Of a stretch of 64,000 nt of DNA, positions 9,440 through 49,439 are shown in pieces. A program made the translations under genes and the position numbers. How positions within the stretch are numbered: position 1 is the stretch's first letter; every line of letters begins with the position of its first letter. Below the pieces are notes generated by a model. That model was not told the DNA's origin. It did not search any database and saw only the letters and a program-made list of their open reading frames with translations. Source of the DNA: Mizuhopecten yessoensis (Eukaryota); assembly GCF_002113885.1 (NCBI RefSeq), contig NW_018408842.1:178074-242073 (forward strand), written 5' to 3'.

Positions 9440-9841
9440 CAGTGACAAGTTTTCCTCCAGTATTTCGGCAAGCATAGCGGTTGGGGTATCTAGTTACCAT
9501 CAGTTCAAAGTTCTGAAAAAAACCAGAATGAATTTGGTCCTATTTACTTAAAATGTTACTTAAAAATTAAATTGAAATCAAGGATTAAGTAACGAGTTTG
9601 CAAAAGTTAAGTAAATATGTCTTTGAATAACCGGCGTTCGCATCAGAATGTTTATTTTCGGAGACAGAGAAAACACTACAGATCCGACCTTTTCCAACGC
9701 CAAAATCTCCATGAGTACCATGAGGGAGTGACGAGTAAACTTGGCCCCGAACTGTACTGCCATAGACTTCCCTAGTCCTCTACTCGCACCTATGAGGACT
9801 TCGAAGGTTTCCTTCAGAAAAAGATGCCGATGTTCTGCCAT
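9440..9841 (-). pseudogene. SPR-like pseudogene B (5' part of exon 1 plus decayed exon 3; acidic class)
   Basis: ORF 9578-9841 MAEHRHLFLKETF..GASRGLGKS..VLMEIL; homology lost after ~65 codons; 9445-9515 TTTCCTCCAGTAT..TTGGGGTATCT..CCATCAG..TTCTGAAAA matches exon 3 of the paralogs. Confidence 0.8.
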
Positions 9842-11787
9842 GCTGCTTTTTGGAGCTCCAAACGTTTATATTAATGACCTAAATCACTGTATTACACGAC
9901 AACAATAGGACTGAATTGCTTCAGAAAACTGTACATTTATTTGATACTATTAAAAAATGATTCGTAAATAAGACAACACAGCAGTTTTATCAGGTAAGGA
10001 CTGTCTCATATAGAGTTAATCTAATGTACAATACTAAATATAAACATGTACTATATTTATCATTAACAGGTTAAACTTTTTTCTCTTTAACTCTATATTA
10101 ATCATCTGATGATGTGATAATTAAACTATTTACTTAATTTATTTTACTATCTATAGATTCTAGACTCTAGAAACAGTTACACGTTTGTGTTTTCCTTGTA
10201 GTCGAATTAAGACATATAGTACCGAATTGTCAATATAAAGGTAATTTGAAGTAATTTGTTAATGGTTTATTTCATTACTATCATTGGGTAGTTGAAATGT
10301 TGAATTCTCCTAAACGAATGTTAAGAGGTATTAGTGTTTTTTTGTAGAGAAAACGCAGGTTCCCACAGAAAACGCAGTCTTCAATCTGAGCAACGTGATT
10401 TCCTGATTCGTTCGTTATAACATAGCAAATGTATACATTGATGAAACTGAATGCCAACACCAAATACCGACATTTTCCCGAATTGTTGGGGTGTTGGGTC
10501 AAAATAAAATCGTCTTGTCAATATAATCAGGATGTCATTAGTATCTACCGTGTTGATATGATTATAAGGTACGCTAAATTGAGCAATGACCATAGGGGGT
10601 ATGGTAGCACGATAATAGCAGTCATGTTAATCAAGATATTTCATTACATACAGAAATAAGAAATGATTAACATTAGTGTAATAACATCGGTACTGCCTTT
10701 GTTTGAGACATTTTGTTGAGCTATGTAATATAAAAATATGTCACATGGGTAGGTTTATCTCTAATCGGTGTTATATGTGCCTTGTTTAAACTGAATTTCT
10801 TATCTACGTATAGAGGAGTGCATCTGTCAAGGTCAATGGGTGGGTAAACAGTCTGCCTGTCGTCTGATAAATTGTGTACTTTGATGTACCTGTCCATTAT
10901 AAGTCTACTACTTGCTCGTCGATATTGCTGTATTTTGTGCGTTAACTTATGTCTCACCACACTATTATAATTACAATAATTCAAATTCAAAGTCAAATGA
11001 ATGTTCGTTTACAGGACATTACATTTTTGAGAATAGTTTACGCATCACCGTACCAAAATAAATAGTTAGACATTTTGCCAATTGGTTTGTGTATTGCAGT
11101 ATGAAGAAGAAAATTGTGAACGAAATATCTTCACAAATACGCATTGAACATTTACTATCTAATGGGGTACCTCATATGCAATACAACGTCTTCAAGATGA
11201 AATCAATTTCCATTTCATGTTGTGTAGATGTACCGTATTGGGTCCGAAACGGCCATCCATACTGGTGTGTGTGACGATTTAGGTATTTTCAAGCCTGTTA
11301 CGGAAGTCATGCTAAGAGAGACTTTAACTTAGAAATGACTTTGATCGATATGAATAATGCTATGGGACATTTTACATGCGTTAAACTTGATGGCATTGCT
11401 TAGCTCTTGGGTAGATGCACGGTTTATAATAAACACTCATCATCAATTAGAAAACTAAGCAGTACACCTCTTATGTTAAGCATGAACAAAACCCAATGTT
11501 CAATGGTGTATAATTTAAGGATTACAGGGAAAGGCGAAACAATTAGCTATCAGACATATTTCAGATTTGGTCGATTTTGATTCTGATACAGCCATACTGT
11601 AGTTTGTAAAATGTTTATCTTTTGTGGGGGCACCGTCTGTCTTTATCTGTTCATATTGTGAAATAGAAAAAGAATATGTTTGCGTTACTGCTTAGTTCGA
11701 TTTTTCCCTAACTGTCCATGTTATATATTTAACTTGTCATTTTTTTCGAATTGGCTTTTTCAAGCAATGTCTTTACAATACCCAGAA

Positions 11788-14468
11788 TTAAAATAATTTG
11801 ACACTCTCTACATAAACAGCGTTTTCAAATGTGTTTTCTTCCAGAATCTGAACAAGCGTAGATATTGGAACATCTGGAGACGTCATTGTTCCATCAGCTC
11901 TAAATTCTGAAAATATAAAATATACCATTTTTTATTTTAGATAATTGTATTCGTAACTAAAGTTTAAAAGTTTTATCTAACACACCTTGCATTTTTATGG
12001 AACATATATGAATATTTACTCAACGCCTATACAAATTGCTCGCATTGTATTCAGATATAGAAACCGGTCATTATATATTGTCAATACACGACAGTAATCT
12101 ACTTTATACTTTATTTAAGTGTGATATTAAGTGTTACTGTGAATTTATATTTAACAAATTTAACATAAAACTATTTAATGAAATCTGTAGCAACTGAATA
12201 AAAATAGTCTGTCGCCACATCACAAATGCAATAAAATATGAAGTAGCATGTTAAAAAAATTGGTTAGTTAATATGACAAACCGGAATCATTGCATCAGCT
12301 GATTCATACTAGACAACAGTCATTGCACCGCATCAGGGTTAAATATTATATAATACAGAAACGATTTTGTTACTACTTAACACATCTTTCAAAGACTACT
12401 TAAACATTTGTTAGCATTGGTAATAGCATGAACACACGTACTTTGTAACATTTCAACAACAGACTTATCCATACACGTTTTCTCAACTTGTTTTGCCATG
12501 TCGGTGTCGGAGCAACCCGGTGAGAAAATCAGTATCCTTAGAGACGGTTCCTCCACGGCCAGTACACGCATATACATGTCACGGGCAGCCTTACCTATAC
12601 GAAGTATGTAGATAAAAGTTGAACGTTAACAAATGCCCAAACATCTTAGCTCAAAAAGTGTATACTGTACAATGGACATTTACATAATATAAAGTAGGCC
12701 CAATCAACATTTTACGATGATATAACTACTGTCAAAAACTGAAACGACCTCACGTAATATATTTTAATAATGCAATTAATATATATCATACTATTTTATA
12801 ATAATGTTTTTTTTAACAGATATTATGATATATTTAATACATATTATAATGATAAATCATTACTTATAATTCGTTATCAAGGTCATTAAGATTCATAAAT
12901 TTCATTTATCATCACAAGTTTTAAAAAGAGACTCATTGGTTGTTACAGTCGCATGAGTTGTAAAAAAGTTAATTATCTGTTTTGATGTAACAAATAACAT
13001 AAAAGCATGCACATTATCAAACAGTGGCTTTTTGATTCCCCGATAAAATGATGCTAGGAAGTGACCGACATTTATCAAAATCATAATATAATAGCATCGC
13101 CGTGGAATCTTTGAATGATGAAACAGCTGTATGATGCAGTGTGATAGATTTTAAAGATAAGATTCTATTATGTCTGTGTCTAAAGATGAAGATTGTTGGA
13201 ATTTTAGCCAGTTTGGCCCTTTTGCCACTAGTCCCTCAGGGCGCGGAAAGAGAATATGTTCATACCCTCAAACTACATGTACAATAACACGATGGTTATT
13301 TCTGCTATCATTTATGAAACTGGAGAGGGAAACCGTGGCAACTTTAGCATTTTTTACCCTTTTCGGCCGTGCCCTTAAGTCCTGGAGGTGCGTTAGGTAT
13401 TGATGCTCATTCCATTAAAATGCAAGTATATGATTATCAGTCCAAGCAAAATCGAAATAAATCTCACATTATACTTCAAAGTGTTTTTTCCATATCAAAA
13501 GTATATCCAAATGTATCCCCTCCCAAGAGGAGAATTGATGACCCGGGGGTAACGAAATCCACGTCTTTGACAAAGCATCTTAGGACCATACCATTTCTGA
13601 AAAAGATTTGATTCACAACCCGGGGTATGGTTCATATAATATAATGTCTGGTTTGCCTTTGACCATGGTACTTTCCTGATTTGTTTTTACTTATATCAGT
13701 TCATCGGTTTTTTAGAACTCACTAATATGATTTGTTAACGATAGGACGACCACTGGTAATTGCGATTGGTCAAATGAAACTTCATCAAAGGTGTCCTATA
13801 ATTCAATCCAACCGGAAACTTGGTTTGCTCTAATTGTATATTTTGATTTATTGACAATTAGTAAGAATCACAGACGTGTATTTACATGAAATATGGCGAG
13901 GCATTTAGAATGTTTTAAAAAAGTTGTACTAACCTGCACAGTAAAGATGATATGATGCCAAAGGAACTGAGGTATGTGCTGACGACATATTGACAACGAC
14001 ACGAGATTTTGAAGAATCTGAGAAAGTCTGGAAGAAACTAGTGTTAAGTAAGATCATTCCGGTCACGTTGATGTCGAAGTACTTCCGCACAAACGTGGAG
14101 TCGGAAAGTTCCAGCGACCTCTTTGATAAATCACCCATAGTAGCACAGTCGTGAACGATCATATATTGCTCAAAGTCATTTTGTGAAAAGTTGTTGTCTT
14201 GTAAAAGTCTTGAAAAAATGCCTTTGAAATAATTTTTGTCCTCTGAGTTTCCCTGGTCAAAATGCCTCACCAAAACGTCGATATTCGGAGCCACAGACAA
14301 CACTTCTGACTTGACACTTTCCAAAGGCAAAATATCCATGAGTACCATGACGGAGTTAGGGGGAAACTTGGCCCCAAACTGAAGTGCAATTGATCTCCCC
14401 AGTCCTCTGCAGGCACCTGTAATGGCTACAAAGGTTTTCTTTAAAAATATATTATGGGGTTCCGCCAT
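11788..14468 (-). CDS. SPR: Sepiapterin reductase-like SDR, copy C, 268 aa; exons 14468-13934, 12594-12442, 11906-11788
   Basis: TGACRGLG Rossmann motif, VVNMSS, YCAG|KAARDM..VLAVEEP..PG..DTDM matching SPR; GT/AG introns both phase 1; 535+153+119 nt, open to TAA. Confidence 0.92.
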
Positions 14469-16945
14469 TCTGCTGTTGAAGTAGCCACCTAACGTGTATG
14501 TAACTAGTTACTGTTATAATACGACTGAATTAGGTAGTAAAGGTCCGTCTTGTATGTGCCGTTATCATGGTTTATCGTACATGTATCTCCCTGGGTAGTT
14601 GTTAGTTCCTGTGTGATATAAAGGTAATGATTAGGTGATCACAGCAAAGCTGTGTTCGATCCTGTCCTATTATAAGGACAACAACGCAGTTTATTTTGTG
14701 CATTTTAATAGTTTTGGTCAACTTGAATGTGTTAAAGAATGTTAGGTATTACAACCATTTCCAGAGATAATTAAGAGACACATGTTTATTCATCACTTTT
14801 ATATTTCGGATTAAATTCAAAGTTGACAAAGTTCCATTTTTTTTTTATCCCGAATGATATCCGTAGCATAAAATGTTTTATAATTCAGACTTATGGTAAA
14901 TCATAATAGGCTGAACGCTCGAATGTTGTAATGAAATGGTGATATTGTCGTTACCTGCAATTTTTGACAATACGGTTTTTTACAATCATAACATATACTG
15001 TGTACCTCATAAAGTGTAATGTACCACATGGATTTGTAAAAATTGTCTGTTCATTCTATCTAAGCTCTATTATACCTCAAGCCTATAGGGTACATGTATG
15101 TCACTGAATTAAAAAGATCGACTATATCTAACTCCTTTAAATTCAGTAGGACACTGTTAATGATATATATTTATTATATTTGTTTTATATATTCACTTCT
15201 ATCAATGGATTTTGCCGTTGTTTTTCTTCAGAAATTTAGTTTGTCGTGACCCTGGATAAATTTAACACTTATCTATACAAGATCAATGTTTGTCTGTGAA
15301 ACAATGTGACAAATGTAATATAAATGTGTTTATATACATGAAGCTTTGCATTCATTCTTAAATGTTATTGATTACTGATATATATTGAAAATGTTTATTC
15401 TTTTTTCCATCTTATGAAAAAGTCGTTATTCTAGTATAGAATTTGTCTTAAATAAATCTTTGAAATTCATTATTGATTCAGTGGTATTATGTATGATGTA
15501 TCAGACTGTAATTGCATGTATATACTTTATAGTATCGGTACTTAAGTGTGTGCTTAAAACCCACATCCCACAAGGTGTGTTAAAAATAGGTCAAAAGGTA
15601 GTTTCGAATGATAACAGCTTGAAATATTGCGGTAAATAGCATGTACCAATGCATGCGTGCCAGTAAGGAAGTTCATAAAAATTGTATTCACTTGGACAAG
15701 GTTTGATGTTTCTTCACAATGGAAAATAGGAATATCGATGCTTTTGTATAATACACAGCCTATAAATAGATATCAGCACACTATTCATCAACACAATGTA
15801 TAATCATTTCAATAGCTACCTTAAGAGAAATAATATCATAAAAGTTATCACTGTCGTTTGGCAAAATATGATACAACAAGGAAGTTCAAACTTCAATGTA
15901 TATCTTCATCATAAAACGGCGTTTACAAGCACCCTACTAGTTGGTCAACCCAGTTGAGTTGAGACCATTCAATTGGGAAAGGCATCTCAATTTAATAATT
16001 CTTCTATCTACAATTTTAAACGGATATTTTCTTCAAAATCTGAAAAATCGGGGAAAAATAACTAATGTCTCCCATTGATCAGTTTTGTAATCTGATACTT
16101 TGTATTCATCATAATACTTCATGTATACAATTCATTGTATAATGTAATTAAGATTTCATCAGAATCCATTGTGTTCATGTAATGTTATTGCATATTATTG
16201 TAAGTAAAGGAAACAACAGTTTACCATTATCCAAATAAGAATTTTCATTTTTTCCTGAAAGGCCGTCATATATCTAGCAAGTTATCATTTGGGATTCTGG
16301 CCTTTAGGTACATGTAATGGGCTTTCACTCTTGAGAATCTCAGGTTGCCCTATCCAATAAAGGTATCTACAACAGGGAGATGGTTATGCAGTTCTTATCA
16401 ATCTTGGACAGTATCAATGTCAATGCAGCCTAGGCGCCCCAGATTAGTTATTACATGTATCATCTACAATGTACTTTATACCACCTAACGGTAACACGAT
16501 ACATTTATTATCATTTGTTGTCAGTATAAGAAGAAGTTAAGAACGATTTGGGAACAACTTGAGAAGAACCTGAGAACGGTTTTCCCATTCCCTAGCCCTT
16601 GGGAACGTAATTTCTCAAAAAAGAACGTCTGTTCGCGCCAGATGACGTCCGAAACCGTAAATAGTGTCCACACAAAAGTGATCCGCGTATGAAAATAGTT
16701 CGTCATAAACATATCAATACAGAGTTAAGGAAAATATTGTGAGAAGAAAAACACCATAATGGTGTAATGTGCATATGGACAAGCTAATGACGATAGGATT
16801 GTTTTAAAAGTATTATTTTCTACGTAGTTTAAAGGTTCATTGTATTCCTTCGCGCAAAACTTCTATTTTTTTAAAACATGGTGTTCAGTTGAGTTTTTTA
16901 AATGAAGAAATATATAAGGTAGAAGTAGATAGATGATTAAAAGTT

Positions 16946-17112
16946 TATCATACAGTATTTTCAGTGTTTGTCGTTCGAACAATTTTCTCAACGCTCGCAC
17001 GTACAATGTAGATAAAATCTCGAGGCCACCTGCCGTGGCATCTCGATTTTATCCACATGCTCGTGATGAAAAAAATATTCTCACGACAAACCCTAAAAAT
17101 TCAGTGTGATAA
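16946..17112. repeat. Long imperfect palindrome (~80-bp arms), probable end of a non-autonomous DNA element
   Basis: TATCATAC..TTTGTCGT..GATAAAATCTCGAGGCCAC-loop-GTGGCATCTCGATTTTATC..ACGACAAA..GTGTGATA. Confidence 0.6.
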
Positions 17113-17302
17113 TCTATAAATATCTTTCGCATGACGATGTCTGTTACCTGCTCGTTAATATCGGTACATCTTGTAAGTGCGCTTTACCTTTTAGTAGGTC
17201 GGTGATCGTAAGTAATGCTTAGTATAGTATCCACTCTTGTAATCGCAATAGACAGGAAATGCTTAACGAGTCATGCATCTTAGAAACGTCCTTTATCGAG
17301 AT

Positions 17303-20294
17303 TGTGACGTAACCCCCCTATCGGTCACGGCCCTGCCCTTGACCTCAGGGATCGACGGAAGTCTAGACTGCGTTATACGTCAGTTGTCCGTCCATGGTCA
17401 TTAGTGGTTGATCAATCAAAGTCTGTAACTCTGTAATGTGAGAAGTAGTACCGCTGCCACCATATGTGCGTGACGACTAATTAACTAAACTATACCTGTC
17501 TTGTAAAATGGCTATTGACCCAGCCTCAAATATACATGTGTTAATATATGAGACTAGTACAATGAGCCAAAGGCTCGATTTGACAGGCCGTCACTAAAGT
17601 GTTATCAAGGCCTTACTGGTCTCGAGGTTCGAAAAATGTGTTACGAGCCCAGATTTGTAAGCGATTCCGGTAACTTACTTAAATGAAAACCATGATTCAT
17701 TAAATACAAATATGTACATTTATTGTGTGCCGACTATTTACATAAAATATGAAGTCTTGGTCTTGATCCTGATCCCTAGTTTCCGTAATCGAAGGTATTG
17801 ACAAAAGGTGATATCCAAGTTCGTAGTCTCCACAAAGGTGGGTTCCGTAATGGTTAAGACGTACGATCCTCGAGATGTGTCCTCTCCGTTGGGGCCTCCG
17901 CGCAGCTGGCGGTTAATCAGCTCCCCCCGACAGTGCCTGGGAGAGAACGTGTGCCACCCCAGTCTGTGATAACCAATGGTTACTCCCTTTGCTGAAATCT
18001 AATCCACTGGTCGAGTGTAAACACTATAACAACACGTACTCTTATAATTGCTAATGAAATATGATTGAATTTGATTATAGGCTGACTATCCAAAATATGA
18101 GGGGAAAACTTAACGTTGAAAGTAAGCTCGAAGTAAAATTCCTCTAGGAGTACTAATAGCGGAAATTTGGTAAGGCAACGCAATGACATAATATGACGAT
18201 AAATCCCTATCTCCTGGTCGGGTAATATTCCAACAACGACAGAATAATAATAATCCCTTCACCAATAGCACAAAATACTTGATCACTAGTAACTAATTAA
18301 ACTACACAACTCATTATACCGTCAACACTTTGGTTGTACTGACCTCCCAATACCACTGCACATTCACCACATATATTCCTTATGAATGCAACACAATATA
18401 AATCCAGTCACTTCCTAAATCCCTCATAACTAACACTGTGCAATAACCTTGTCAATCCTGTATGAATACAACTTAATACTAATACACAGTGATTACATAA
18501 ACGCCTTATGACTGAAACACAATATACTGCAAAGTGATCACATACATCCCTTGTGAATATAACACACTAGAACAGCATAGTAATCCCATAAATCCCTTAT
18601 GCACATAACACAATATAACTACACAGTAGTCACATAAATCCCTTATGAATCTAACACAATATACTGCACAGTAGTCCCGTAAATCCCTTATGAATCTAAC
18701 ACAATATACTGCACAGTAGTCACATAAATCCCTTATGAATCTTACACAATATACTGCACAGTAGTCACATAAATCCCTTATGAATCTTACACAATATACG
18801 GCACAGTAGTCACATAAAGCCCTTAGGAATCTAACACAATATACTGCACAGTAGGCACATAAATCCCTTATGAATCTAACACAATATACTGCACAGTAGG
18901 CACATAAATCCCTTATGAATCTAACACAATATCACTGCACAGTGATCATGTAAATCCCTTATGCATATAACACAATATGACTGCACAGTGATCACATAAA
19001 TGCCCTATGCATTTAACACAATACACTGCACAGTAGTCACGTAAATCCCTTATGAATCTAACACAATATCACTGCACAGTGATCACGTAAATCCCTTATG
19101 CATATAACACAATATAACTGCACAGTGATCACATAAATGCCCTATGCATTTAACACAATATACTGCACAGTAGTCACGTAAATCCCTTATGAATCTAACA
19201 CAATATACTGCACAGTGAGCACATAAATCCCTTATGCATATAACACAATATAACTGCACAGTAACACAAGTTCTTTATAAACGGTATCCAGTTCCAGGGT
19301 TACACGATAATCCAGTGGAATACACAAAACACATCCAGAGGCACTGTTGACACTTCTCTATTCTCCACGCAAGTTATAAGAATTACCCTATTCCAGACTG
19401 ACACTTCACATTTACACGTTAAACCAAATCTGGTGGTAATTCTAAGTGGTTTCTGCCTAACACTTTTATGGGATGAATCTCTACAGGTTGTCGTTCTAGT
19501 AATCAGGCATGACTAAGTGGTGATTTTATGATCGCTGCCGTCACTCCTGTGACCACTGACACTACAGCTAAAAATCACCCCCTCCATGCCTGAGGATGAG
19601 ATAAGGAGTTAATAAGGTCTAAACAAATAATTTAGTTGATTAATAAAGTTGGGAAATTAGTAACTATACACAGTTAGTTAAGACCCAAGATAACGAAGAA
19701 AGATATAAATCTTCAAGGTAGGAAAATCCCCCGAAATTATGAAACACTTATATAAGGTAATATTACAGTAATAAACACTTATCTAAACAAATGGCAAGAC
19801 ATATTATGTATTTACCCAACTGCCTGATAGTCCTGCTTGAGTCATCTTCGTTTAACAAGCCGCTATCTATAATAGGTAATGATGTGTATAATCCAATCTA
19901 TCTCGTGCGAAATTCCTTATCTCAACAAGCCCTAGGGAGCCGCGCACCCCTTTTTATACGACCCTCATTAACACCTATTGACTAATTGACCAATCAAATT
20001 GGGCTCCATCGGCCAGGGTCCCGGATGAAAGGAGGGGGTTTCTTCACTATTGAGTGGCTACTCTGCCCACCCCCCCTACTCATGACGTAGAGATCCCTAT
20101 TTTTAACAGAGAGTGGTCAGTCTAGGGTTAATGGCTCCTATACTATCTCAACTGTGTGGCTGGGAGGACTCGATGAACCCCAGTAAATTACACATGAATT
20201 GTGAAACAAAATTCTGGTGGGCTGGAAGCTTACGTCAGCTAGGAAATAAAGACGGGGTATAACTTTGTTACAATATGAAAGAAATGAAGTCACA
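17303..20294 (-). mobile_element. Putative long solo LTR or LTR-like insertion containing a minisatellite
   Basis: TGTGAC...GTCACA inverted termini; minus-strand TATAAAAAGGGG near 19950 and AATAAA near 17720; no ORF; flanks GAGAT/GAGGG give only a partial target-site match. Confidence 0.4.
18400..19265 (+). repeat. 45-bp minisatellite, about 19 copies
   Basis: Unit CACAGTAGTCACATAAATCCCTTATGAATCTAACACAATATACTG; starts at 18667, 18712 etc.; degenerate toward the left edge. Confidence 0.95.
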
Positions 20295-25529: not shown

Positions 25530-27018
25530 TACTGAACAAAAAAAGAAACGCGCGAAGTTCCCCCCTGCAGTACACCTTAGCTGTAAGGAAATAATGGAAT
25601 ATTTGGTCAGGTATTACATCAAGAACGATCTCCCTTCTCAACAATCTACCCTTAAATCAGCCAAGCGTGACGTTGTCATTGTGTGACTCTGTGAGCTTCT
25701 TTAGTCCAAATCACGCGGCGTGATCAAGCCAAGCTGGCGTTTTTCAAACAAATAATCTCAACGGATACTCTAAGTTCAGCCACATTAATTTTCCACGTTG
25801 GCATTTTGATTTCGCCATTGTCGGAGATGCCACGCTTAAGGCAAATTCAGAGGGGTAGACCATTTGCGATGTTGATGGGTGGTCATAGCCAAACTACTTT
25901 CGCACGGCAATTTGGTGTTGGCCCGTGTACAATTAACCGTTTCTGTACACGTTTCCGTGCTACTGGGTTAGTTTCCGATCGTCCCAGGAGGGGTCGTCCG
26001 CGTGTAACGACCGCACGACAAGACAGGGCGATTCGATTATCGCACTTGCGCAACAGATTCAAGACTGCTGTAGAGACTGCGTCGCATACCTTAGGTACTC
26101 ATGGCAGACCCATTAGTCCTCAAACTGCCAGAAATTGCTTGTGTGCCGAGAAAATCATTGCGCGCCGACCTTATGTAGGGCCACCTCTGACACCACGGAG
26201 ACGGCAAGTGCGTCTTGACTGGATGCGCAGACATGGCCCGAATAGGTTTGGGATGCATCGATGGAGGCGTCTGTCTGTATCGTTCAGACGGAAGAAAAAG
26301 GCTATATCGCAGACGCGGTGAGCGTTTCGCCGAGCTGCGTGGTTGAACGCGATAGATTCGGTGGGGCTTCTGTAATGGTTTGGGGAAGCATCTCCCATGG
26401 AGTAAAATTCCCCTTAGTGGTCCTGGATCAAAACCTCAATGCCGTTTGATACAGAGACCAGATCCTCCAACCACTTGTCCTTTCACTTCTCGACGTCATA
26501 ACTTAATTTTCCAGCAAGACCATGCTCGACCGCATGTTGCCAGAGTCTGTCGTGATTTTCTCACGGCAAACAACGTTCAGCCTCTGGAATGGCCCCCATA
26601 TAGCCCCGACATGTCTCCCATTGAGCATCTGTGGGATTAGCTGGACATGCGTATTAGGAAACGTCAAACCCCCCCAACTAACCGTGCCCAGTTGATCGCA
26701 GCATTAACACAAGAATGGAACAACATTCCCTTAAGGCGAATAAATGTTCTCATGAATTCAATACATAGGAGAATCCGTGCAGGGATTCGTGCAAAAGGTG
26801 CCCACACCAGGTACTTAAGTGTCGTTTTGTTTTTCGCGGGTATCCCACTTTGAGTAACTACTGCTTACACGAGTGACGTCACACAGACTTTTCTTCTACA
26901 GTATTGTAAAGAGTAGACTTGTCCTTTCATATTGATATAAAATTTTGTACAAATTTCCCAAAATATCATAGGCTTTTGATTGCATAATTTAATTGTGCGT
27001 TTCTTTTTTTGTTCAGTA
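25530..27018 (+). mobile_element. Tc1 (DD34E) DNA transposon, near full length with inactivated transposase
   Basis: TIRs TACTGAACAAAAAAAGAAACGC / GCGTTTCTTTTTTTGTTCAGTA flanked by TA; ATG 25827, HTH region, GRPR, VMVWG, FQQDHARPH...WPPYSPDMSPIEHLWD (34 aa between D and E); first catalytic Asp region deleted, frameshifts and stops. Confidence 0.95.
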
Positions 27019-28194: not shown

Positions 28195-29990
<1,796 letters not shown>

Positions 29991-31725
29991 ACTGCTGAAC
30001 AAGTCACCGCCTTACCTGTAAGCTGTTAGTGACTGACATAGTAAGGTTGTATCGCATAACAGTACATATTATCCGTGATGTTATCAAGGTGAGTAACCCA
30101 TGCAGGGTCAGGATGTGTTGGCTGTGTCATTGAAAATTGAGAATCCTCTCTTATCAATATCACGTAACATATATTTATGGTTCGTAATTCGCTATTCATC
30201 AATCACGAAGGAAGTGTATATGATGAATTAAAACCATTCTCGTTAGAAAAGTGATTATATAAAAGTAGAATACGCATGTTGTATATGTACTGTGTCGATG
30301 CGAGTTGTATGGAAATATGTCCCGAACATAGTAATGTTGTATCGTATTACAATATATATGATCTGTGAGGTTATCAACACACGCAGGGTCAGAATGTGGT
30401 GGTTGTGTAGTAGAGGTGGTTTCGTTGTAAAATTAAAACTCCTTTGTGTTTTGTTAACTGTCAGTTTATTCATCGAGTGTATGGAAAGCTTTGTAAAACC
30501 AAAAGAACCCTGCAACAAGTACAAAGTACAAGTTACAGTCATAGATATAAAACAGACATACATAATCCCATTTAACGTTTACAAATGTAAGGGAAATAAC
30601 TCTTACACGATTACATAACCTTTACCCTTACAAATCTAGTATCAACTGCGATACAATTCACAGTTACAACTTTTACGAAATACAATCAAACTCAAGCTTT
30701 GACTCCACACAAAATGACTGGACAATATATTAAATTCACAGATAGCAGTCTTCACAAACCAATGTTATTTATACTTTTTACATAAAAAACGCTATAACAT
30801 ACCTGAGTGTGGCACCAGGCCTTGGCTAAAACCTATATGTACGATGCCTTCTTAAAGCATATGCGATACACTGTAGTTTAAATAAAAGCCATCTAAACAC
30901 ATTTATCGAACCTTGGGCAAATGAGCACACGTATTAACGCCTCTTACAAAATATCAAATTACCTGACCTTCATTATTACGTTTTAATATAAAAAAATACT
31001 CTAATCATATATGATTTCTTATTAAACAAATCATAAATCATCTATACTTAGATTAGATCCAAATAGATTTGTCACTCTTATAAAACACATAATACATAAC
31101 ATTGGATATTACACAAAGACAAAGAAACACTTACATTACATCTCTCCGTCCGTCACCTATGAGTCCTAAAAAAGTACTGACGTGAGTTATTAGCCCTAAA
31201 AAACTTGCCAAAACTGACAACCCAGAACGAAGCAATGAAAACGTGATCAATGAACTACTATATGGTATACAAACGTATCAACATACGTAGAGTCCAAATA
31301 CCACAATACACCTGTAGACATAACATCACAGCATAAAATACAACACGCGGACGCGGTAGTTTCATTATTTGGAGTACGAAATATAAACATGGACGATCGG
31401 CGCGCTATGGACGGACTTGGTAATCAAACATACATAAAAACAGAGACATTTATTGAAAAAAAATGATAATCCTCTCTAATCAATATCACTTGACAGATAC
31501 TTATTGCTCGTAATGTGTTATCTATCAATCACTAAGGTTGTGAGTATAATGAATACAAAAAAAGCCATCTCCGTTAGAAAAGTGAATTATCAGACAACGT
31601 AGAATACGCATTCTGTATGTTTACTGTGTCGATGCGAATTGAAGGGAAATCTTTTCAGGACAAACTTAGTCTGATAAAAGAAAGGAAAGTGTTATCTATA
31701 AGAAAAAAAAATATTGTCACATTTA

Positions 31726-32505
31726 TACTGGCCCCAATAATATTATTTAAAATATGTATAACATCTGAAATATAACGACGTCATAGCTTTGTAAAATTGT
31801 CCCTGGGTATTGGCTTGCCATGGCTTAATAGCGTTAATCATTAAAGAATCATTGAAGAGGCTGAATAACGAGGAATCGACGTCAGCATCCTCAAACGTTA
31901 GACCAGTTTAGAACGGCCTTACAGGAAGAGTGACGGAAAATATCGATGCCTTTTTGAATCGACTCATCGCTTCCATGCGACGTCGTTGTCAGGCTGTGGT
32001 CGACACAAGGGATGTTATTCCATGCGACGTCGTTGTCAGGCTGTGGTCACCACAAGAGATGTTATTCCATGCGACGTCGTTGTCAGGTTGTGGTCGACAC
32101 AATGGATGTTATTCCATACGACGTCGTTGTCAGGCTGTGGTCGACACAAGGGATGTTATTCCATGCGACGTCGTTGTCAGGCTGTGGTCGACACAATTGA
32201 TTTTTATCCATGCGACGTCGTTGTCAGGCTGTGGTCGACACAATGGATTTGTATCCATGCGACGTCGTTGTCAGGCTGTGGTCGACACAATGGATGTTTT
32301 TCCACGCGATGTTAATTCTGTGATTTGTACCTACTCTGGATAAACACACGTGACGTCATTTTATAGAGCATTTTTAATGAAATTGAGGTCAATGTATTGA
32401 TACAACATATTTCTATCGAGTTCGACAGTGTTAATTTACAAAATGTTTGATAGATTAATGACATATTATCAATACAATAATCTACCGTTTCTTTGTGGGC
32501 CAGTA
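31726..32505 (+). mobile_element. Internally deleted Tc1-family element with transposase C-terminal remnant
   Basis: TA-TACTGGCCC...GGGCCAGTA-TA ends; decayed RQHPQTLDQ..ALQEE..FLNRLIASMRRRCQAVV typical of the Tc1 transposase C-terminus. Confidence 0.75.
31973..32310 (+). repeat. 47-bp minisatellite, 7 copies plus a partial copy
   Basis: Unit CCATGCGACGTCGTTGTCAGGCTGTGGTCGACACAAGGGATGTTATT at 31973, 32020, 32067, 32114, 32161, 32208, 32255. Confidence 0.95.
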
Positions 32506-33704
32506 TATATCGACGAATTCATAATATAAGATGGATATTATTCTAAATTATCTCTGACGCAACTTATATTTTACAAGTAAATATAAATCAGTGTTACGTA
32601 TAAGCCATTTGATGATGGAAAATCCTGAAAAAAGAAATAGTGAAACAACCTTAAAATGTATATAATGTAATTTTGGTGTATGCACTCGTCATTGTAATAC
32701 AATACATTGTATTGTATCTTATCGTTTACTGTATATCTGTAAGATGAACTGACATTACTTTGGCAAAGTTTTATAGTCGATCATTATTTGCTGTATGTCT
32801 CATATTATCGTTGCTACCTGTGATTGCTGCGTCCAGTTCAGTCCAATTTACTCTAATTATACACAGTGTAAATTATGGTTGTGAAATGACTAATTCTTTC
32901 CGACTTTTCTCCTTTCAGTTATAACATTCAACAAGATGCTCACGTAAATGAAGTATCGGTGTAAACATTGATAATATGTAAGCCGGCTTTATATGTCAAT
33001 AACATCATTGATACTCTCGCACAGATTTATAATGGTATCATTTCTTCTTTTTCTGAAATATTCTGGTGGTTTTGAATTGAACCTAATGCCTTTTCTTAAG
33101 GGATTCATTTTGTCGGGATCTTGAATAAATAAAACAGTTCTTATGTTTGCAGGACAATTGTTCTTTATATACAGTAGCAATATTACGAGTGGAATATAAT
33201 TTGATTCGTGAAGCCATGCATGCATCGTATGTTTGATACAGATACTCCAATGCGATGTACAGTGTTACATTGGATTGACAGCGTGTTAATTGTCTGAAAC
33301 ATACTCATGAACTTAGTCATATTCATAATATACAAAAATTGAATTTAAGCAGCACATTTTCTTTTTTTATACAAAAAGTGAAGTAATCTGAAAATGTTGT
33401 GCTATCATGACAAGAAAAAAAGATATATTCAAAAAGTATTCCAAAAAGAGAGTAAATTGGATAACAATCTGAACGAGTAGTGCAATTGTTGCACACCATG
33501 TTGTACTTACATGACAAGTAAAAAAAATCAAAATGTATTCCAAAAAGAGAGTAAATTTTAACACTTTAACACGCAATTAAAATTTAAACTAACACAAAAA
33601 GGCGACTCTTACAAAACACAAAAGATATAAGATTACTAGCGGTTTTGAAGTTAGCACACTTATATCTGAGCAGTTGGTACACAGGCCTCTTGGTAGCTGG
33701 TAAA

Positions 33705-33912
33705 CTACAGTTGTGGCATCGCACAATGTTCCACGATGCGCGGTGTGTGATTGATGTGCGCACGGTATGTGAACGATGTGTGCACGATGTGCAAACGATA
33801 ACGACGATTAGTGCAATTGTTAAATCGTACAGTTGTGCGCACCATGTGTGGACGATATGCGAACGGTGTGTTAAAGCTCTTTTCGGTGCGTTGTGCGGTC
33901 ACACAACTGTAG
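33705..33912. mobile_element. Small MITE (~200 bp)
   Basis: CTACAGTTGTGGCATCGCACAATG versus CGTTGTGCGGTCACACAACTGTAG terminal inverted repeats; interrupts a GTTGGTACAC repeat tract. Confidence 0.6.
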
Positions 33913-33924
33913 CCTGTCTGTTGG

Positions 33925-34243
33925 TTCACTAGCCTCTGATCAGTTGGTACACATTTGTCTGTTTAGTTGGTACATCAACCACTGAGTTGCTTGCACACAA
34001 CTCTGGCCAGTTGGTACACTTGCCTCTGGTCTGTTCTAAAAGTAGCTTATGGTCAACTGGTTTTACTGGTTTCTGGTTAGCTAGAACATAAGCTTCTAGT
34101 CAGTTGGTACACAGGCGTCTAGTCGTTGGTACACTATCGTCTGGTCTTTGGTACACTAGCGTCTGGTCGTTGGTACACTAGCGTCTGGTCGTTGGTACAC
34201 TAGCGTCTGGTCGTTGGTACACTAGCGTCTGGTCTTTGGTACA
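33925..34243 (+). repeat. 22-bp tandem repeat (GTTGGTACACTAGCGTCTGGTC)
   Basis: Near-perfect copies 34124-34243, degenerate copies to the left. Confidence 0.85.
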
Positions 34244-34646
34244 TTTCGCAAAGATCAAATGCAATACTGAACATATCATACGTTTTGGTTGAGAATAAAA
34301 TCAATAACCAAAAAATAATACACATATTGAAATTCAAATTAAAAATCGATGAATCGATGACATCCATGACTATTTGAGGTTTATAACTGTTGTTTTACTG
34401 TTTCCTCACATAAAACATATCGCATTTATTTTTATGTGAATGTACCTTGGATATTGCATAACAGATTCTTGCTTGTGTTGTAATAAATAAGTCCATAGTC
34501 TTCTACTCACTAGTATCTGTAACAAAGATAACAAAATGTGATGCTTAAACAAAATTGATGTTAAAATATACCCTAAATGTCCGTATAATGAGATATGTTT
34601 GGCATTTTTGTATGTTTTCAGTCGATGTTTTCTTCAACACGCAGAT

Positions 34647-36296
34647 TTAAAATATTTTGTCACTCTCTACGTAAACGGCATTTTCAAATTTGTTTTCCTC
34701 CAGAATTTGGACAAGCTTAGCGACTGGGGTATCTGGAAGCGTCATCTTTCCATTAGCACGAGTTTCTGAAAATAAGTAAGTGGCCTTATAAATATTAATT
34801 GACCTCAGTTTTAACTGTAGGCTACGCATTCATCTAACACACTATGAACCTTTAAGCCGATGAAACTTTACTCAAAAAGTATACAAATGGCAAACCATAT
34901 ATTCAAATATAGAAGTAAATAAAATTACGCTTAACACAATGAATCATTAAATCAGTTGAATCATGCGAGACAACAGTTATTGAACCGCATGAGAGTAAAA
35001 TACTACATATCATTTAAATGAACGTCTTACTACTGACATTGTTAAAAACAGGAAATGAACTCCAAAGAATTCCCAAATCTTTCTCTGCATTGGTAATACT
35101 ATGAAACACTTACTTTTTATCCTGTCTACAATAGACTTATTAAAAGACAATCGTTCAGCTTGTTTTGGCATTTCGGTGTCGGCAGAACCTGGTGCGAACG
35201 TCAGTATCCTCAGAGAGGGCTCCTCTTCGGCCAGTACACGCATATACATGTCACGGGCAGCCTTACCTTTAGGTAGGAATAAATAAATGTTGCATCCATC
35301 GTAATTAAATATCAAACAACAAAGTGGAAAAAAGTATTTGTCAATAACGTTACAATAATAAAAATACTACCTTAAACGGGAACAATGACGTCACAACATT
35401 GTACCATTTTACTGATTAAGTTAGTAATTGAAATTCCATGGAAACATTCATGTAACGGGTACGATGCTAAAGGTTGAGATCGAAGACCATTTTTCTCAAC
35501 ACAAGTCCTTCCTAATCAAACTGCATGCAACCAGAAAGAACTCTGTTATACATTATATAAAGTCGACGATTTGGAATATAAGTCGGAGAAATCCATGTTT
35601 GAAAAATGTATCAAAAATATTAAACGTGATACATGTACCTTAACCAATATATCAATGATAAAGTCAAATGCTATGCAAATATTAATTGATTAACTTAATT
35701 ATAACAATAACTGAGTGAAATATGATATGGTTTTTAAAGTGATTTGAATGTCGTAACTAACCTGCACAGTAAAGATGAACTGATGCCGTGGGAGTTGAGG
35801 TGTGTGCTGACGTCATATTGACGATGACCCGAGATTTTGTAGAATCGGAGAAAGTCTGGAAGAAACTCGAGTTAAGAAGGATCATCCCGGTCAGGTTGAT
35901 GTCGAAGTACTTCCGAACTGACGTGGAATCGGAAAGTTCCAGCGATCTTTTTGACACATCACAAAGAGTAGCACAATTGTGTATGACCATATATTGCTCA
36001 AAGTCATTTTGAGAAAAAGTGTTTTCTTGTAAAAGTCTTGTAAATATGCCTTTGAAATAATATTTGTCTTCCAAGATTCCCTGGTCAAAATGCCGCACCA
36101 AAACGTTGATAGTCGGTGCCACAGACAACACTTCTGACTTGACACTGTCCATAGGCAAAACATCCATGAGAACCATGGCGGAGTTAGGGGGAAACTTGGC
36201 CCCAAACTGAAGTGCAATTGATTTCCCCAGTCCTCTGCTGGCGCCGGTAATGGCTACAAAGGTTTTCTTTAGAAATATGTTCGGGTGTTCCGCCAT
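34647..36296 (-). CDS. SPR: Sepiapterin reductase-like SDR, copy F, 268 aa; exons 36296-35762, 35266-35114, 34765-34647
   Basis: TGASRGLG, VLMDVL, VNMTSA, YCAG|KAARDM; 535+153+119 nt in frame; ends NAVYVESDKIF*. Confidence 0.92.
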
Positions 36297-37507
36297 TCTG
36301 CTATTGAAGTTACCACCTAACGTATAATTATGTTACCAGTGACTGATATAACACGACTGCACTAGGTAGTCAAAGTTCGTCATATATGTGCCGTTATCTA
36401 TCATAGTTTAGCATACATTTATCTCCCTTCATAATTGTTGAATAGATGGTTACAGCTGTTTTCGATCCCGTCCTACGTTTTTGATATGTTCAGAGCTAAT
36501 CTAGATTTATTGTTCGTTTTTTGTTATCATGAATGTTATATGAAGATGTACTTATATAAACAATCAATATATAAATATATATAATACGTAGATAGAATAG
36601 CAACTGTGTTGATGCTAATTTGGGTAAAAAAGGAAACCTTTCCAGCACAAACCGTCCTCTCGTACTATAAACCTCTATTAGGTAAACTGAAACATTGTAT
36701 ATCATTTCTTCTATTTGATGATTCAGAACAAGGATCCGTCGTCAAAAAAGATATATTTTAGAAGAACTTGAAAATGAATTAACAAAAGTCTATTAAGCCC
36801 ATTTATATATCTGATTGAATTCAACCTTTACATTTGCAAAATATTATTATTTTAACAATAGATCTGTTTTCTAAACCCTTGTGCTTGTCTATGCATAATC
36901 AAGCCTTGATAAAGAGCGTTTTATCTGTTAAAATATCGACGTCTTCCCGTGCGTGTGTTGATAGGTTGTACCTTTGACTTTAATGCCCCTAAAGGTTACA
37001 TTGTATCTAGAGATTGCGCTAAGGACCTGCATCCCACAAGGTGTGTTAAAATAGGTCAAAAAGCAGGTTAAATGATAACAGTGTGACACCTGGCGATGTA
37101 CCAACTAATTTTGAATTCATGATATCTGAAGATAAATTAAAACCTCCCGATGTTATAATTGTCGGATCTCAGGAAAACATTCACAAACTAAATATAATAA
37201 TCTTACGCAAGTTCAAACTTGTATTATCATTTTCTGTTGTATTAGGGGGAATTAGACTTATCGATGTCCGATTTTCTGTTTTATTTATAGTTATATATGT
37301 CATCACAGTATTCATCTCCACAATGTAAATAATTACAAAAAATGTCGTAAAATACACTACAAACTACAATGTATTACTGTTGACAATATAATTCATAAGT
37401 TTCAATTTATTATTGATATAAAATGAATGCAGTTATTGTATTTCACATAATTAATCATAAAACCCAAAATTGTTCGAACCGGATTCAGGTTAATCTATTC
37501 TGTTAAA

Positions 37508-38477
37508 TATGTTTATAAAGGAACTGACACGAGTGTTCATGAAATATTGAATTAATAAACAAGTTTAATAAATTCAATAGTACATGAACACGAGTGTTAG
37601 ATGCTATGTATTATATAATTCGAGAAACATCCCTACATACTTATTCTCAATACCCCTCCTCTATATAGCGACAGCTGACGAAAGGACGCATTACAGGCAT
37701 TATGTTTGGAGCTCGCTGCGCCTTAAATAAAGTTCCAGAAACTTCTCCCTGATAACCTTTTAAATTAACAAACAACCATTTCGGTTTCCTTTCATCAATC
37801 AATGCTTTAATAATTATCATAACAACATCAACAATGGTTTGTATTCTTAAACCATTCAACGGATTGGCGATTACGAAAATGTCAGTGACGTCACATATTT
37901 GGCACAAGGCTCGTGCACTGTCAAAGTAAAGGTCATCACAATACACATCGAAGTCGGCATGTTTAAAAAGTGTACAGCGACGGATTGTCATTGTCTATAA
38001 GCCGATCGCGTTTATTAATAGAGAGGGTTCTTAATGAATATGGACATCGATGTGTCCTCCTGTTACTGAGCTGCGGAATCCGCCATAGAACCAGAACACT
38101 GATGAAGACGGCTGGTTATAAGTGGTCATCATTGATTGTGTGTGTGTCGAAGAAATTGAAATGGAATTTGAGCATGCAGCTCTAGAATTTGTGCGCGAAT
38201 TTAACACTTGTGTTCATATAAAATCGAATTTATGAAACACGTTTATTAATTTTATTAGTTCACAGTGCCCTTCAGCAGCTAGCAATGCAAACATAATCTC
38301 CTCTCCAGTAATAAAGTCAGCCATTTTGTTTACAAATGTAGAAGTTGTAGTGCATAGGAATATGACCTGATTTCCACGATGACAAGACTCATTTGCATGT
38401 TTATTGTACGTGTGCTATATCATGTGAATTGACCGTTTAGATTGCACGGAAATAACCTGTATTATATAATAAACATG
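37508..38477. mobile_element. ~1-kb non-autonomous DNA element (Crypton-like layout) upstream of copy F
   Basis: Absent from the paralogous flank of copy D (24320-24360); ATGTTTAT...ATAAACAT ends; hairpin CACGAGTGTTCATG..ATTGAATT..AATTCAAT..CATGAACACGAGTG at 37528-37596. Confidence 0.6.
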
Positions 38478-39506
38478 TATATAGAATACTGCTACCTATA
38501 CTTTCTAAAATGTAGCAATATAGATACATGTATATTCGTGCAAAACAAATAGAAGCGTTCCCTTTCCATTAAATATTTAGGTATCCCATCGATAATAGGG
38601 AATTTCGATACTGAACTCAGTATCATCCATTTTGCTAATTTATTAATGGAGCATCTTGAGCACTCTGTTGGAGTGTCGCCCTAAAATTTGTAAAATATAT
38701 GTAAACTAGGTGGGTGATACGGGCTCCATACCATTTACATCACAGGAAGAGGTAGGCTGAAAAAATCCTTTCCATGATACCCATGTCGTAAAAAAAGTCA
38801 CCAAACTAAACTACGCTCGTTTTTCGTACGTGCAGGATTAATCTGTGTCAAAGATATAAATTAAGAAATTGAAAGGAATTAAATATTATAAATATTATTT
38901 TTGACGTGCCTATCAGCACATTTATTGTTATTATCACATATTATACTTGACATTAATAAAAGTTATTGGAATTTTAAATCGTTTCCTCCCATTATACTTA
39001 TAACAGCAATGGCATTCTATGACTTCAATTTTAAGCATTTTATCGACTTATTGCGTCACAGTACATTAAACACCAACTATGCCATTGTTCGATTGATGTC
39101 TATCTATCCTTATAATTTCTACTCAGTTTATCAAGATACATCTAATCTTGTATACAGTATAATGTAAATGATTAACTTTTCTGATGCTTACATTATAACT
39201 ATGTATACATATTGAATTCAATAAAACTGGGGTGTTGTCGAATTTTAAAAAACAAAAATCACATTAAAAAATGCTATATTTCCTCCATCTTTTGACTTCA
39301 CACCCTTCCTTTTTTTTTCATTCAATAAAACGAATTATGTTTCATTTCAGAAGTAAAAATCAACACTCTAAATTAAAGTCATAAATAAGAGATAGTTTAT
39401 TTCCTCTATCTTTTGACATCAAACAAGTGTGAAAAAAAAATGATGCAGTGGAGTTAACATTTTTGAATTGGCTATTCTCATGCGATTTTTCACATTCTGC
39501 AGACTT

Positions 39507-42176
39507 CTAAAGTATTTTGTCACTTTCTACGTAAACAGCATTTTCAAACGTGTTTTCCTCCAGTATCTGGACAAGCTTAAAGATTGGGGTATCTGGATGT
39601 TTCGTCTTTCCATTTGCTCTTAATTCTGAAAGACAAGTATCCTTATTTAATTTGATTTCACGTGTACCCACTAAACATATTGACTGACCATCAACATTTA
39701 CTCAGTTGCTTTACAGTGTGCACACATTGTATTCATTTATTGAAACACTTTATTATGTATTGTCAATTCAAGATTACTGATCTTGTGTGTTTAAGTTTAA
39801 TATTAAATTTGCAATAACTAGAACATTTGTGGAAAATGAACAAAAGTAGAGTGCATTAACATAAAAAATGCAATATAAGATGAAGTCGCAAGATCAAATT
39901 TAGGTTCCTAACTACATGTTGTAATTACGTATAAAACATTGTCGAATCAATGACTAGTTGATTCATACGGTACCAGAGTTATTAACCTGTATCTAACACA
40001 AACATGTTTATCTTGGTACTGCTATTGTAACGACTTAAAATAATCTCCAAAAGAAAACTAATTATTTCTTAGCATATGACCCAGTATTACAATGAGCACA
40101 CGTACCTTTTATTTTTCCAACAAAATACTTATTCATAGAAAATCTTTCAACTTCTTTTGCCATTTCGGTGTCGGCGGAGCCCGGTGCGAACGTCAGTATC
40201 CTCATAGACGGTTCCTCTACGGCCAATACACGGATGTACATATCACGGGCAGCCTTACCTATAGGTAGGAGTACATTTTGCATACATCGTAATTAAATAT
40301 GAACAGCAAAGTTAAAAAAAAAGTAATAGTCAATAACGTTACAATAATAAAAATACTACCTTCAACGGGAACAACATTGCCTTACCTAAAAGTTAACGTT
40401 AACAACAAGGTACATAACATAAATAACTATCAATTACGTTATAAGGATCTAAGCAAAAATTACGAAAAAATCTACAACCTTCAACCCAAGCAACAACTAC
40501 ACATAATAATATTTTATTTAGTACAATGTAAGTCAATTATTTAATTTCTGTGTCAACAAAAAAGGGCCTGTATGATTCCCTTACTCCAAACCTGCCGGCA
40601 ACAAATTGTATCAAACTAAAAGTTGCTATCATTATTAAATAATTCATTATAAGTGAAACGCCATCGCATAACGGTGTTGTCGGTTAATACGAAATAATAT
40701 TAACGAGACAATAATAACTGCTAAAGTTATTAAATACATCATATGAGGCCACAGTCATACATTCAGGATTTTTACTGCTGACCTTGATACAAGGACCATT
40801 CCCGATTAAAATTTGTCAAAAGTCTGATCATGATCCTGTGATTCGTGGCGAGACACCAATTTGTAAAAACATTTATTTAATCACGACAACAATCAGATAT
40901 TGTACAGGAAGCGTCCCGATTCAGTCGTTTCAAGCCGAATTCGTCTTGATTCTCCCGTTCTCAATCCGAATCTGATCCAATTTGTATCTTCTGCATAGTA
41001 AAAAAACCGACCGAATCTGCCTCGACAGCGTCTCGATTCTCCCGAACGTGATCCGACAGAGATCAAACAGTGACCGGACAGTGAACCGACGCGTTCGGCA
41101 AGATCTGGACGCAATCTGGACTCAATCGGCAAGAAACGGCAATGAAACGTTTCTCCAAATCATGCCTGTTCATCACAACAGCGTCTCCATCCACAGGACA
41201 CCGTCCAGACACCGTCCAGACCACACAGAACATTGTTAGGATTTTGATCCGATACAGCAGATTCTATCACGACATCATCATGATTGTTTTTCCCGAATGT
41301 TTTCGGAACGCACCTTACTGTCGAGAGTGCTTGGCCGACCTCTCTGGACCTTTCCCGATCAGTAGGACTCTGTAACGAGCGTATACGACTGCGTTCAGAC
41401 AATGATCGGTTATTCCAGATCATTGAGGATAGTAATCCGACTTTTTCGCTTTTCGTGACGTAGCGCTGTCTGATCTCAAACGGGAGCCATACTCGGCACT
41501 GTGTGAACGCCGCATACGGAGTTATGAATACTTAATGGTCAAAGTTTTAATCAATTAAATGAAACTATTGATCAAATAATTGAACTGATGGCATTAGATT
41601 AATGAATTATGCTATGTCATTTAAGTGGTCATTACCTGCACAGTAAAGATGCAATGATGCAATGGGAATTGAGGTAGCTGCCGACGTCATATTGACGACG
41701 ACACGAGACTTTGTAGAATCCATGAAAGTCTGAAAGAAGCTCGTGTTCAGGAGGATCATCCCGGTGAGGTTAATGTCGAAGTACTTCCGAACTGACGTAG
41801 AGTCGGAAAGTTCCAATGATCTCTTTGTTACATCACCGATAGTAGCACAGTTGTGAACGATCATGTATTGCTCAAAGTCATCTTCCGATATCTCATTTTC
41901 CAATAACAGTTCATTAAATATGTCTTTGAAATAATCCGTGTTTTCTAAGTTTCCCTGGTCATAATACCGCACCAAAACTTTGATATTTGGCGCAACAGAC
42001 ATCACTTCAAATTTGACACTCCCCAAAGCTCGACTATTCCTGGCCATGAGAACTATGACGGAGTTAGAGGGAAGCTTGGCACTCAATTGCAGTGCTATAG
42101 ATCTCCCCAGTCCTCTGCTGGCCCCGGCTATGGCTACAAAGGTTTTCTTTAGAAGTATGTTCGGGTGCTCCGCCAT
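39507..42176 (-). CDS. SPR: Sepiapterin reductase-like SDR, copy G, 270 aa; exons 42176-41636, 40258-40106, 39625-39507
   Basis: AGASRGLG, VLMARNSRAL, VNMTSA, YCAG|KAARDM; 541+153+119 nt in frame; ends NAVYVESDKIL*. Confidence 0.92.
40744..41514. mobile_element. GC-rich ~770-bp insertion in intron 1 of copy G (MITE-like, possibly PIF/Harbinger)
   Basis: Absent from the paralogous intron of copy E (flanks AATAACTGCTAAAGTTA and GGA(G/A)TTATGA join there); weak inverted ends TGAGGCCACAG / CTGTGTGAACGCCGCA; many CCGA/TCGG motifs. Confidence 0.55.
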
Positions 42177-49230: not shown

Positions 49231-49439
49231 ACTATCATTTAGTCAATATGAATCAAGTAGCAATAACAAAGAGTTAATGTAAGATTAAGATTTGTTCTAG
49301 CACAACTGCGATGTAACTATATTATGTGTGACTCGTGTTATCTGAATGAACTTTGACAAATGAGGACACACGCACGATTGATCATTTTACACGTTTCCGC
49401 ATTCACGCAGTTTACTTCAGAGGCAGTGATTGTTAACAA

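Follow-up and report, generated by a model that had tools for sequence, protein, structure and literature searches.

Here we present an analysis of a cluster of genes related to sepiapterin reductase (SPR), an NADPH-dependent classical short-chain dehydrogenase/reductase (SDR), in a 64-kb stretch of scaffold NEDP02005515.1 of the scallop Mizuhopecten yessoensis (offset ~178,073; hereafter, the window). Three of its intact copies, C, D and F, carry an Asp at the end of the second β-strand (β2) and lack the Arg-Asn that follows this strand in the two others, E and G. The change most simply arose by a single 6-nt deletion rather than by a set of substitutions, and the three copies probably encode NAD(H)-preferring oxidoreductases. 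The window is free of N runs and comprises these five three-exon genes, all on the minus strand, as well as two pseudogenes (A and B) and one fragment on the opposite strand (Table 1). In gene models rebuilt from the window, all introns of the five genes are GT-AG, and the rebuilt models are identical to the corresponding database proteins. Exon 1 or database protein identifiers served as queries in similarity searches; joined exon models were used in local scripts only.

The two classes are distinguished by the residues that follow β2. A sequence-only reading of the locus had divided the copies at this point, and the rebuilt models reproduce its division: C, D and F read M-D-[IV]-L-P-[LM], E and G read M-A-R-N-S-[QR]-A-L, and exon 1 is 535 nt long in the former and 541 nt in the latter. 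Pseudogene B, given there as M-E-I-L, reads MEILAL and is two residues short, like C, D and F. The I-A-R-I assigned to pseudogene A was also recovered (IARIKEAL), although A itself lies outside the interval (9700-42070) in which all copies had been placed. The same reading took A-R-N as the canonical SPR motif, and this holds: A45, R46 and N47 of E correspond to A41, R42 and N43 of human SPR in a gap-free alignment (E numbering was related to the human protein by a chain offset anchored on Tyr170). The NADP-binding A/S-R-x after β2 is thus present in E and G and absent from C, D and F, in which residue 46 is Ile or Val and no basic residue directly follows the strand. The Gly motif of C, D and F, TGA[SC]RGLG, is the TGxxxGxG of classical SDRs, the Pfam family adh_short is matched above its gathering score, and the catalytic Asn-Ser-Tyr-Lys set (N134, S163, Y176 and K180; YxxxK) is invariant in the three copies, which also keep D71.

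The origin of the Asp codon can be traced at the nucleotide level. In 10 out of 10 intact scallop genes inspected, from three species, the Arg class is encoded by ATG GCN AG[GA] AAT, and the Asp class reads ATG GAT RTT TTG CCT. Most simply, one out-of-phase 6-nt deletion, ATG G[CN AGG A]AT to ATG GAT, would have dropped Arg and Asn and made the Asp codon in a single step. MAFFT and BLAST independently placed the gap as ATGG------AT, and the counterpart of the six missing bases in copy E is 29857-29852. When 6-nt deletions were considered across codons 38-56, only 1 of ~25 distinct products had an acidic residue 45, namely the inferred one. In scallop paralogs R-N is most often followed by Val (12 of 26), and the deletion in an A-R-N-V ancestor would thus yield D-V at once; P0006 is a gene with A-R-N-V. 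Residue 48 of B is still Ala, which suggests that Pro48 arose after the deletion. An in-phase deletion of Ala-Arg combined with an Asn-to-Asp substitution would give the same protein, but is less parsimonious because it requires two events.

We used AlphaFold models of D (predicted local distance difference test (pLDDT) 95.7) and G (pLDDT 96.1) to locate the new residue. In both models β2 spans residues 40-45, and its last residue is Asp45 in D (pLDDT about 97 in this region) and Ala45 in G. Together with the gap-free alignment of E, this indicates that Asp45 occupies the position of human Ala41 and not that of Asn43. The two-residue loss appears to be taken up by the next helix, which comprises residues 50-59 in D, after a 4-residue loop containing Pro48, and residues 48-61 in G, after a 2-residue loop. 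At the level of secondary structure, then, Asp45 is not displaced from the adenosine ribose site, a displacement that would have spoken against a cofactor switch. The D model superimposes on human and mouse SPR with a Z score of 34.6 and a root mean squared deviation of 1.6-1.7 Å over 254-255 residues; Foldseek and VIA rankings confirm the fold, and the cofactor is not discernible from them.

Phylogenetically, C, D and F form one clade (support 100/98, recovered in all 200 bootstrap trees) that is sister to E, G and P0005. The clade is nested within a scallop-only expansion whose other members are without the Asp, almost all of them having [AS]-R-N instead, and the Asp state is therefore derived and of single origin. 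Its appearance is dated between dS (synonymous divergence) ~0.5, which separates the Asp and Arg classes, and ~0.3, which separates C from D and F; switched and unswitched sister genes are about 70-75% identical. The Asp class is a single recent derived clade, known from this species only, and not a deep split. Pseudogene B has the same gap and is nearest to C in both nonsynonymous divergence (dN) and dS, and it probably belongs to this lineage; its tree placement within the Asp clade involves a long branch (0.64; approximately unbiased test, p-AU 0.44). A decayed exon-1 fragment about 100 kb away on the same scaffold (L001:9374-9487), reading D-I-S-A-L-E-S-V-K-S-E and 87% identical to C over 90 nt, is possibly an Asp-class relic older than the Pro, with its upstream part lost. 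Separately, the 59 nt 5′ of the C start (window 14527-14469) are almost identical to those of P0005 (L001:9942-10000), whereas the coding regions are 82% identical, which suggests gene conversion between the classes.

Among 252 SPR-like proteins retrieved, C, D and F are the only Asp-type members, and position 45 is not acidic in any of the other 249; a few unrelated ones lack the Arg, none of them having gained Asp. The Asp is absent from every Pecten, Argopecten and Ylistrum copy sampled, and no Asp-type paralogs were found in unannotated DNA around the Pecten maximus, Argopecten irradians and Ylistrum balloti paralogs. Homolog searches and a profile search of 1.84 billion representatives (top hits within a length window, from a clustered set, with no hits labelled Chlamys or Azumapecten) detected no Asp-type SPR elsewhere, and a search using words from the Asp region returned C, D, F and E only. 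Two members of another scallop SPR-like subfamily, P0035 (Ylistrum) and P0038 (Pecten), have lost the β2 Arg differently (L-S-P-R-N and L-S-P-S-D) and show a Ser-to-Gly change in the Gly loop.

Within the Asp class dN/dS is 0.33-0.43 (95% confidence intervals 0.21-0.64), similar to the 0.32 between E and G, and C, D and F have thus been constrained by purifying selection since the deletion. Their differences cluster in the lid region (20 of 37 sites), as would be expected if the substrate range were diverging.

The prediction that this change alters the cofactor draws on natural and engineered precedents. The L-M-D-I-L-P of copy C aligns gap-free with L-Y-D-I-A-P of malate dehydrogenase (E 0.08, not significant and illustrative only), the Asp of which we take to bind the NAD ribose. 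In 15-hydroxyprostaglandin dehydrogenase and malate dehydrogenase, as in C, D and F, an acidic residue at the tip of β2 is followed by a hydrophobic one; there, however, the Asp is described as an ancient state that was lost toward NADP use, whereas in the scallop copies it has been regained, convergently, within an NADP family (PMC4777477). An Asp or Glu at the β2 tip is said to exclude NADP (Laurino et al., PMC4777477). Another parallel is a sensor built on human SPR, A41D/R42W (Sallin et al. 2018, NAD-Snifit), which shares the scaffold of C, D and F and has its Asp where they do, with a hydrophobic, non-basic residue next. It responds to NAD+ with a c50 of 63 μM and does not respond to NADP+ up to 1 mM, values that describe binding only, and the wild-type SPR sensor responds to NADP+ at 29 nM (PMC5990361). 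The engineered protein differs from the scallop ones in its route, two substitutions as opposed to a natural 6-nt deletion with later changes (Leu47 and Pro48). A coenzyme pocket reshaped by a short deletion also has a precedent (Toledo-Patino et al. 2022, PMC9860332), but that was a laboratory deletion of three residues in β1-loop-α1 which led from NAD toward S-adenosylmethionine, in contrast to a natural, recent two-residue deletion after β2 that would lead from NADP toward NAD, with unswitched sisters adjoining. The cofactor switch proposed in the sequence-only reading is hence supported by the position of the Asp and by the NAD+-specific precedent; its picture of two classes is refined in that the Asp class is one recent clade and neither class is the orthologous SPR.

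Taken together, we propose that SPR-derived SDRs expanded in tandem in a scallop-specific manner, part of this expansion being held in the window, and that in one copy an out-of-phase 6-nt deletion joined the first base of the Ala45 codon, G, to the last two of the Asn47 codon, AT. The resulting Asp would bind NAD(H) through its adenosine 2′/3′-hydroxyls and repel NADP(H) through its phosphate. The deleted copy would then have been duplicated into C, D and F, and probably B, and C, D and F would have been held by purifying selection as NAD(H)-preferring carbonyl/alcohol oxidoreductases, alongside E and G as enzymes of the NADP(H) type. We assign this explanation as a whole a probability of roughly 0.72 (0.72-0.75 for the NAD(H) preference of C, D and F).

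Several observations weigh against it, and they are best considered with the alternatives that they favour. The NAD(H) preference is a prediction from sequence, model and engineered precedent, and the deletion could instead have harmed the cofactor site while providing no good NAD site, leaving C, D and F as weak or dual-cofactor enzymes, or as low-turnover ligand binders constrained for folding or another role. The engineered loop keeps its length, whereas C, D and F lose two residues and gain a Pro; A41D/R42W binds its new cofactor about 1000-fold more weakly than the native protein binds NADP (PMC5990361); copy C additionally has S20C and N107D, the latter within the NxAG motif; and B is a pseudogene. 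The transcript evidence for F, presented below, is also compatible with impairment. We nonetheless regard such a loss as unlikely, since over dS ~0.3 the Asp class has the same dN/dS as the Arg class, the catalytic residues are whole in all three copies, the lineage was duplicated twice more after the deletion, and natural NAD sites look similar to the new motif (D, hydrophobic, x, P). Selection on the Asp itself is less evident: its invariance in three recent copies is weak evidence, and family-conserved sites vary less than others among C, D and F (3 of 24 versus 69 of 237), but with p = 0.06. It is considerably less probable that C, D and F still prefer NADPH, with Ser20 and Arg21 holding the 2′-phosphate and the shortened loop turning Asp45 away. 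All three copies indeed keep Arg21, the second phosphate-binding basic residue, in the Gly loop, and D and F also keep Ser20; moreover, the AlphaFold models are ligand-free and come without side-chain coordinates, so that they give no orientation for Asp45 and its bidentate contact to the adenosine 2′/3′-hydroxyls is a predicted one. Yet the A41D/R42W pair alone was enough to make human SPR unresponsive to NADP+, no change of the Gly-loop Arg being reported (PMC5990361), Ser20 is lost in C, and Asp45 is the last residue of β2 in a confidently modelled region.

Expression was assessed by a read comparison covering 5,801 bases and four runs. F-specific exon 2 and the exon 2-3 joint were present in one raw RNA run, with a single read at the joint, and also in one contig set whose RNA origin is a guess; the exon 2-3 joint of G was seen in that contig set. 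F exon 1 was uncovered in all four runs and depth on F was very low, and the Asp codon was therefore not seen in RNA. There are two NCBI models of F (window 36296-35760), a 179-aa model restricted to exon 1 and the full 268-aa model, and the former again counts against the proposal. The acceptor of F exon 2 is AAG and not YAG, making intron retention possible. A loose end at exon 1-2 and a depth-51 contig were not counted as F expression, as many paralogs share an almost identical exon 2 start. A possible frameshift allele of G, near the C terminus, is indicated by a single run X2 contig (depth 17) that differs in exon 3 by a 1-nt deletion and a substitution (window 39553-39557). The absence of the Asp codon from the RNA, and the fact that every Asp copy comes from one assembly scaffold, might be taken to mean that the motif is an assembly or annotation artefact or that the copies are unexpressed relics. 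We give this very little credence: the identical gap occurs in four copies that are mutually 72-92% identical and differ in their flanking codons, open reading frames are uninterrupted and splice sites preserved, there are spliced reads and contigs specific to F, and other runs of the species contain 33-51% of the F-region words.

The sequences indicate that neither class is the true SPR of the tetrahydrobiopterin (BH4) pathway, because the scallop ortholog lies elsewhere and Asp257 is replaced in both classes. Human Asp257 (HxDFYD motif), which we take to be the pterin anchor, is Glu in C, D, F and G (E263 in F) and Gly in E, and Leu158 and Pro200 of human SPR are also changed in both. The ortholog, P0036, is located on another scaffold, groups with Mytilus and Saccostrea SPR, scores 188 bits against 126 for F, and has ISSL-type, APGP and HIDFFD motifs. 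For the cluster genes, the nearest solved structures are human and mouse SPR (PDB 1Z6Z and 1SEP; 31-34% identity), with which they share the fold, the Gly motif and the Ser/Tyr/Lys set; the Arg-class copies also keep A-R-N, while in C, D and F Ala41 has become Asp and Arg42 and Asn43 are absent. TIGR01500 is the best family match, with 86 bits for F and 111 bits for E in a scan of exon 1 only, against a curated cut-off of 206.55. In the human enzyme, Asp257 hydrogen-bonds active-site ligands, and quinones, dicarbonyls, aldehydes and ketones are further substrates that mammalian SPR can reduce (PMC7520308). Given this broad substrate range and the changes at the pterin site, a general carbonyl/alcohol oxidoreductase is the likeliest role for the expansion.

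In mammalian cytosol, NAD+/NADH is 100-600 and NADPH/NADP+ is 10-100 (PMC5990361). From such ratios, and provided that they prefer NAD, C, D and F would be somewhat more apt to run in the oxidative direction, as the sequence-only reading suggested, than in the reductive one; that, overall, they tend to oxidise alcohols while E and G reduce carbonyls has a little under an even chance. NADH-linked reduction of favourable substrates such as quinones is possible. The substrate could, speculatively, be a small molecule other than a pterin, for example a carbonyl or alcohol from the diet or of xenobiotic origin. The only scallop link in the literature covered is a weak lead: an SPR, its paralog unspecified, is listed among genes that toxic algae induce in the gills of Chlamys farreri (PMC9324277).

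Table 1 SPR-like genes and relics in the window (window coordinates).
Feature	Position	Strand	Exons and other landmarks	Database protein
Copy C, intact Asp-class SPR-like gene, 268 aa	11788..14468	-	exons 14468-13934, 12594-12442, 11906-11788; Asp45 codon 14336-14334	P0003, XP_021375765.1
Copy D, intact Asp-class gene, 275 aa	21426..23105	-	exons 23105-22571, 22117-21965, 21565-21426; Asp45 codon 22973-22971	P0002
Copy F, intact Asp-class gene, 268 aa	34647..36296	-	exons 36296-35762, 35266-35114, 34765-34647; Asp45 codon 36164-36162	P0253, OWF39688.1
Copy E, intact Arg-class gene, 269 aa	28195..29990	-	exons 29990-29450, 28946-28794, 28310-28195; A45-R46-N47 at 29858-29850	P0007
Copy G, intact Arg-class gene, 270 aa	39507..42176	-	exons 42176-41636, 40258-40106, 39625-39507; A45-R46-N47 at 42044-42036	P0004
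Pseudogene B	9449..9841	-	first 68 codons of exon 1 (9841-9638), Glu45 at 9709-9707, short register; exon-3 remnant 9490-9449; remainder gone	
Pseudogene A, Arg class	4261..5738	-	exon 1 only, with stops and frameshifts; I-A-R-I at 4674-4663; ~930-bp insertion at about 4689-5616	
Decayed SPR-like fragment	49413..50070	+	3′ part of exon 1 and exon 2; β2 region missing, so class not readable	

The cluster extends beyond the window, with three more annotated Arg-class genes and further relics about 50-110 kb off on the same scaffold. There, two near-identical 5′ ends of SPR-like pseudogenes (L002:791-998 and L002:15749-16001) lie on either side of P0006, which itself is present twice on the scaffold (L002:10001 and L003:21093), reflecting either a recent duplication or an assembly duplicate. 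Other features of the window include a Tc1/mariner transposase fragment between D and E (25806-26321; Pfam HTH_Tnp_Tc3_2), pieces of a HECT-domain open reading frame on the minus strand (52794-54267), and tandem-repeat arrays with units of roughly 45-95 bp (18348-19263, 31971-32312, 57628-59734 and 61164-63302).

The rule that β2 governs cofactor specificity is textbook knowledge and the same switch has been engineered. NADP/NAD switches, however, are usually either engineered by several substitutions or inferred across very old divergences; what distinguishes this case is a predicted switch that is recent, natural and probably the work of a one-step indel, known from one species, with unswitched sister genes adjoining as controls. 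As one deletion would both remove the phosphate-binding residues and write the NAD-binding Asp, a cofactor change by a single indel becomes directly testable, and the later changes Leu47, Pro48 and S20C are candidate tuners of the switch. For sensors or biocatalysis, C, D and F may also prove superior to A41D/R42W as an NAD-binding SPR scaffold. In the literature that we covered, which is incomplete, there was no report of this cluster or of a natural NAD-type enzyme of the animal SPR family. We advance only tentatively the stronger claim that with C, D and F that family has its first natural members dependent on NAD, a one-step deletion having repeated the engineered switch and made an active NAD+-linked dehydrogenase out of an NADPH carbonyl reductase. 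If true, the cluster would encode opposing reductase/dehydrogenase pairs for the same class of dietary or xenobiotic compounds. The many scallop genes labelled 'sepiapterin reductase-like' appear to represent a diversified oxidoreductase family and not extra BH4 enzymes.

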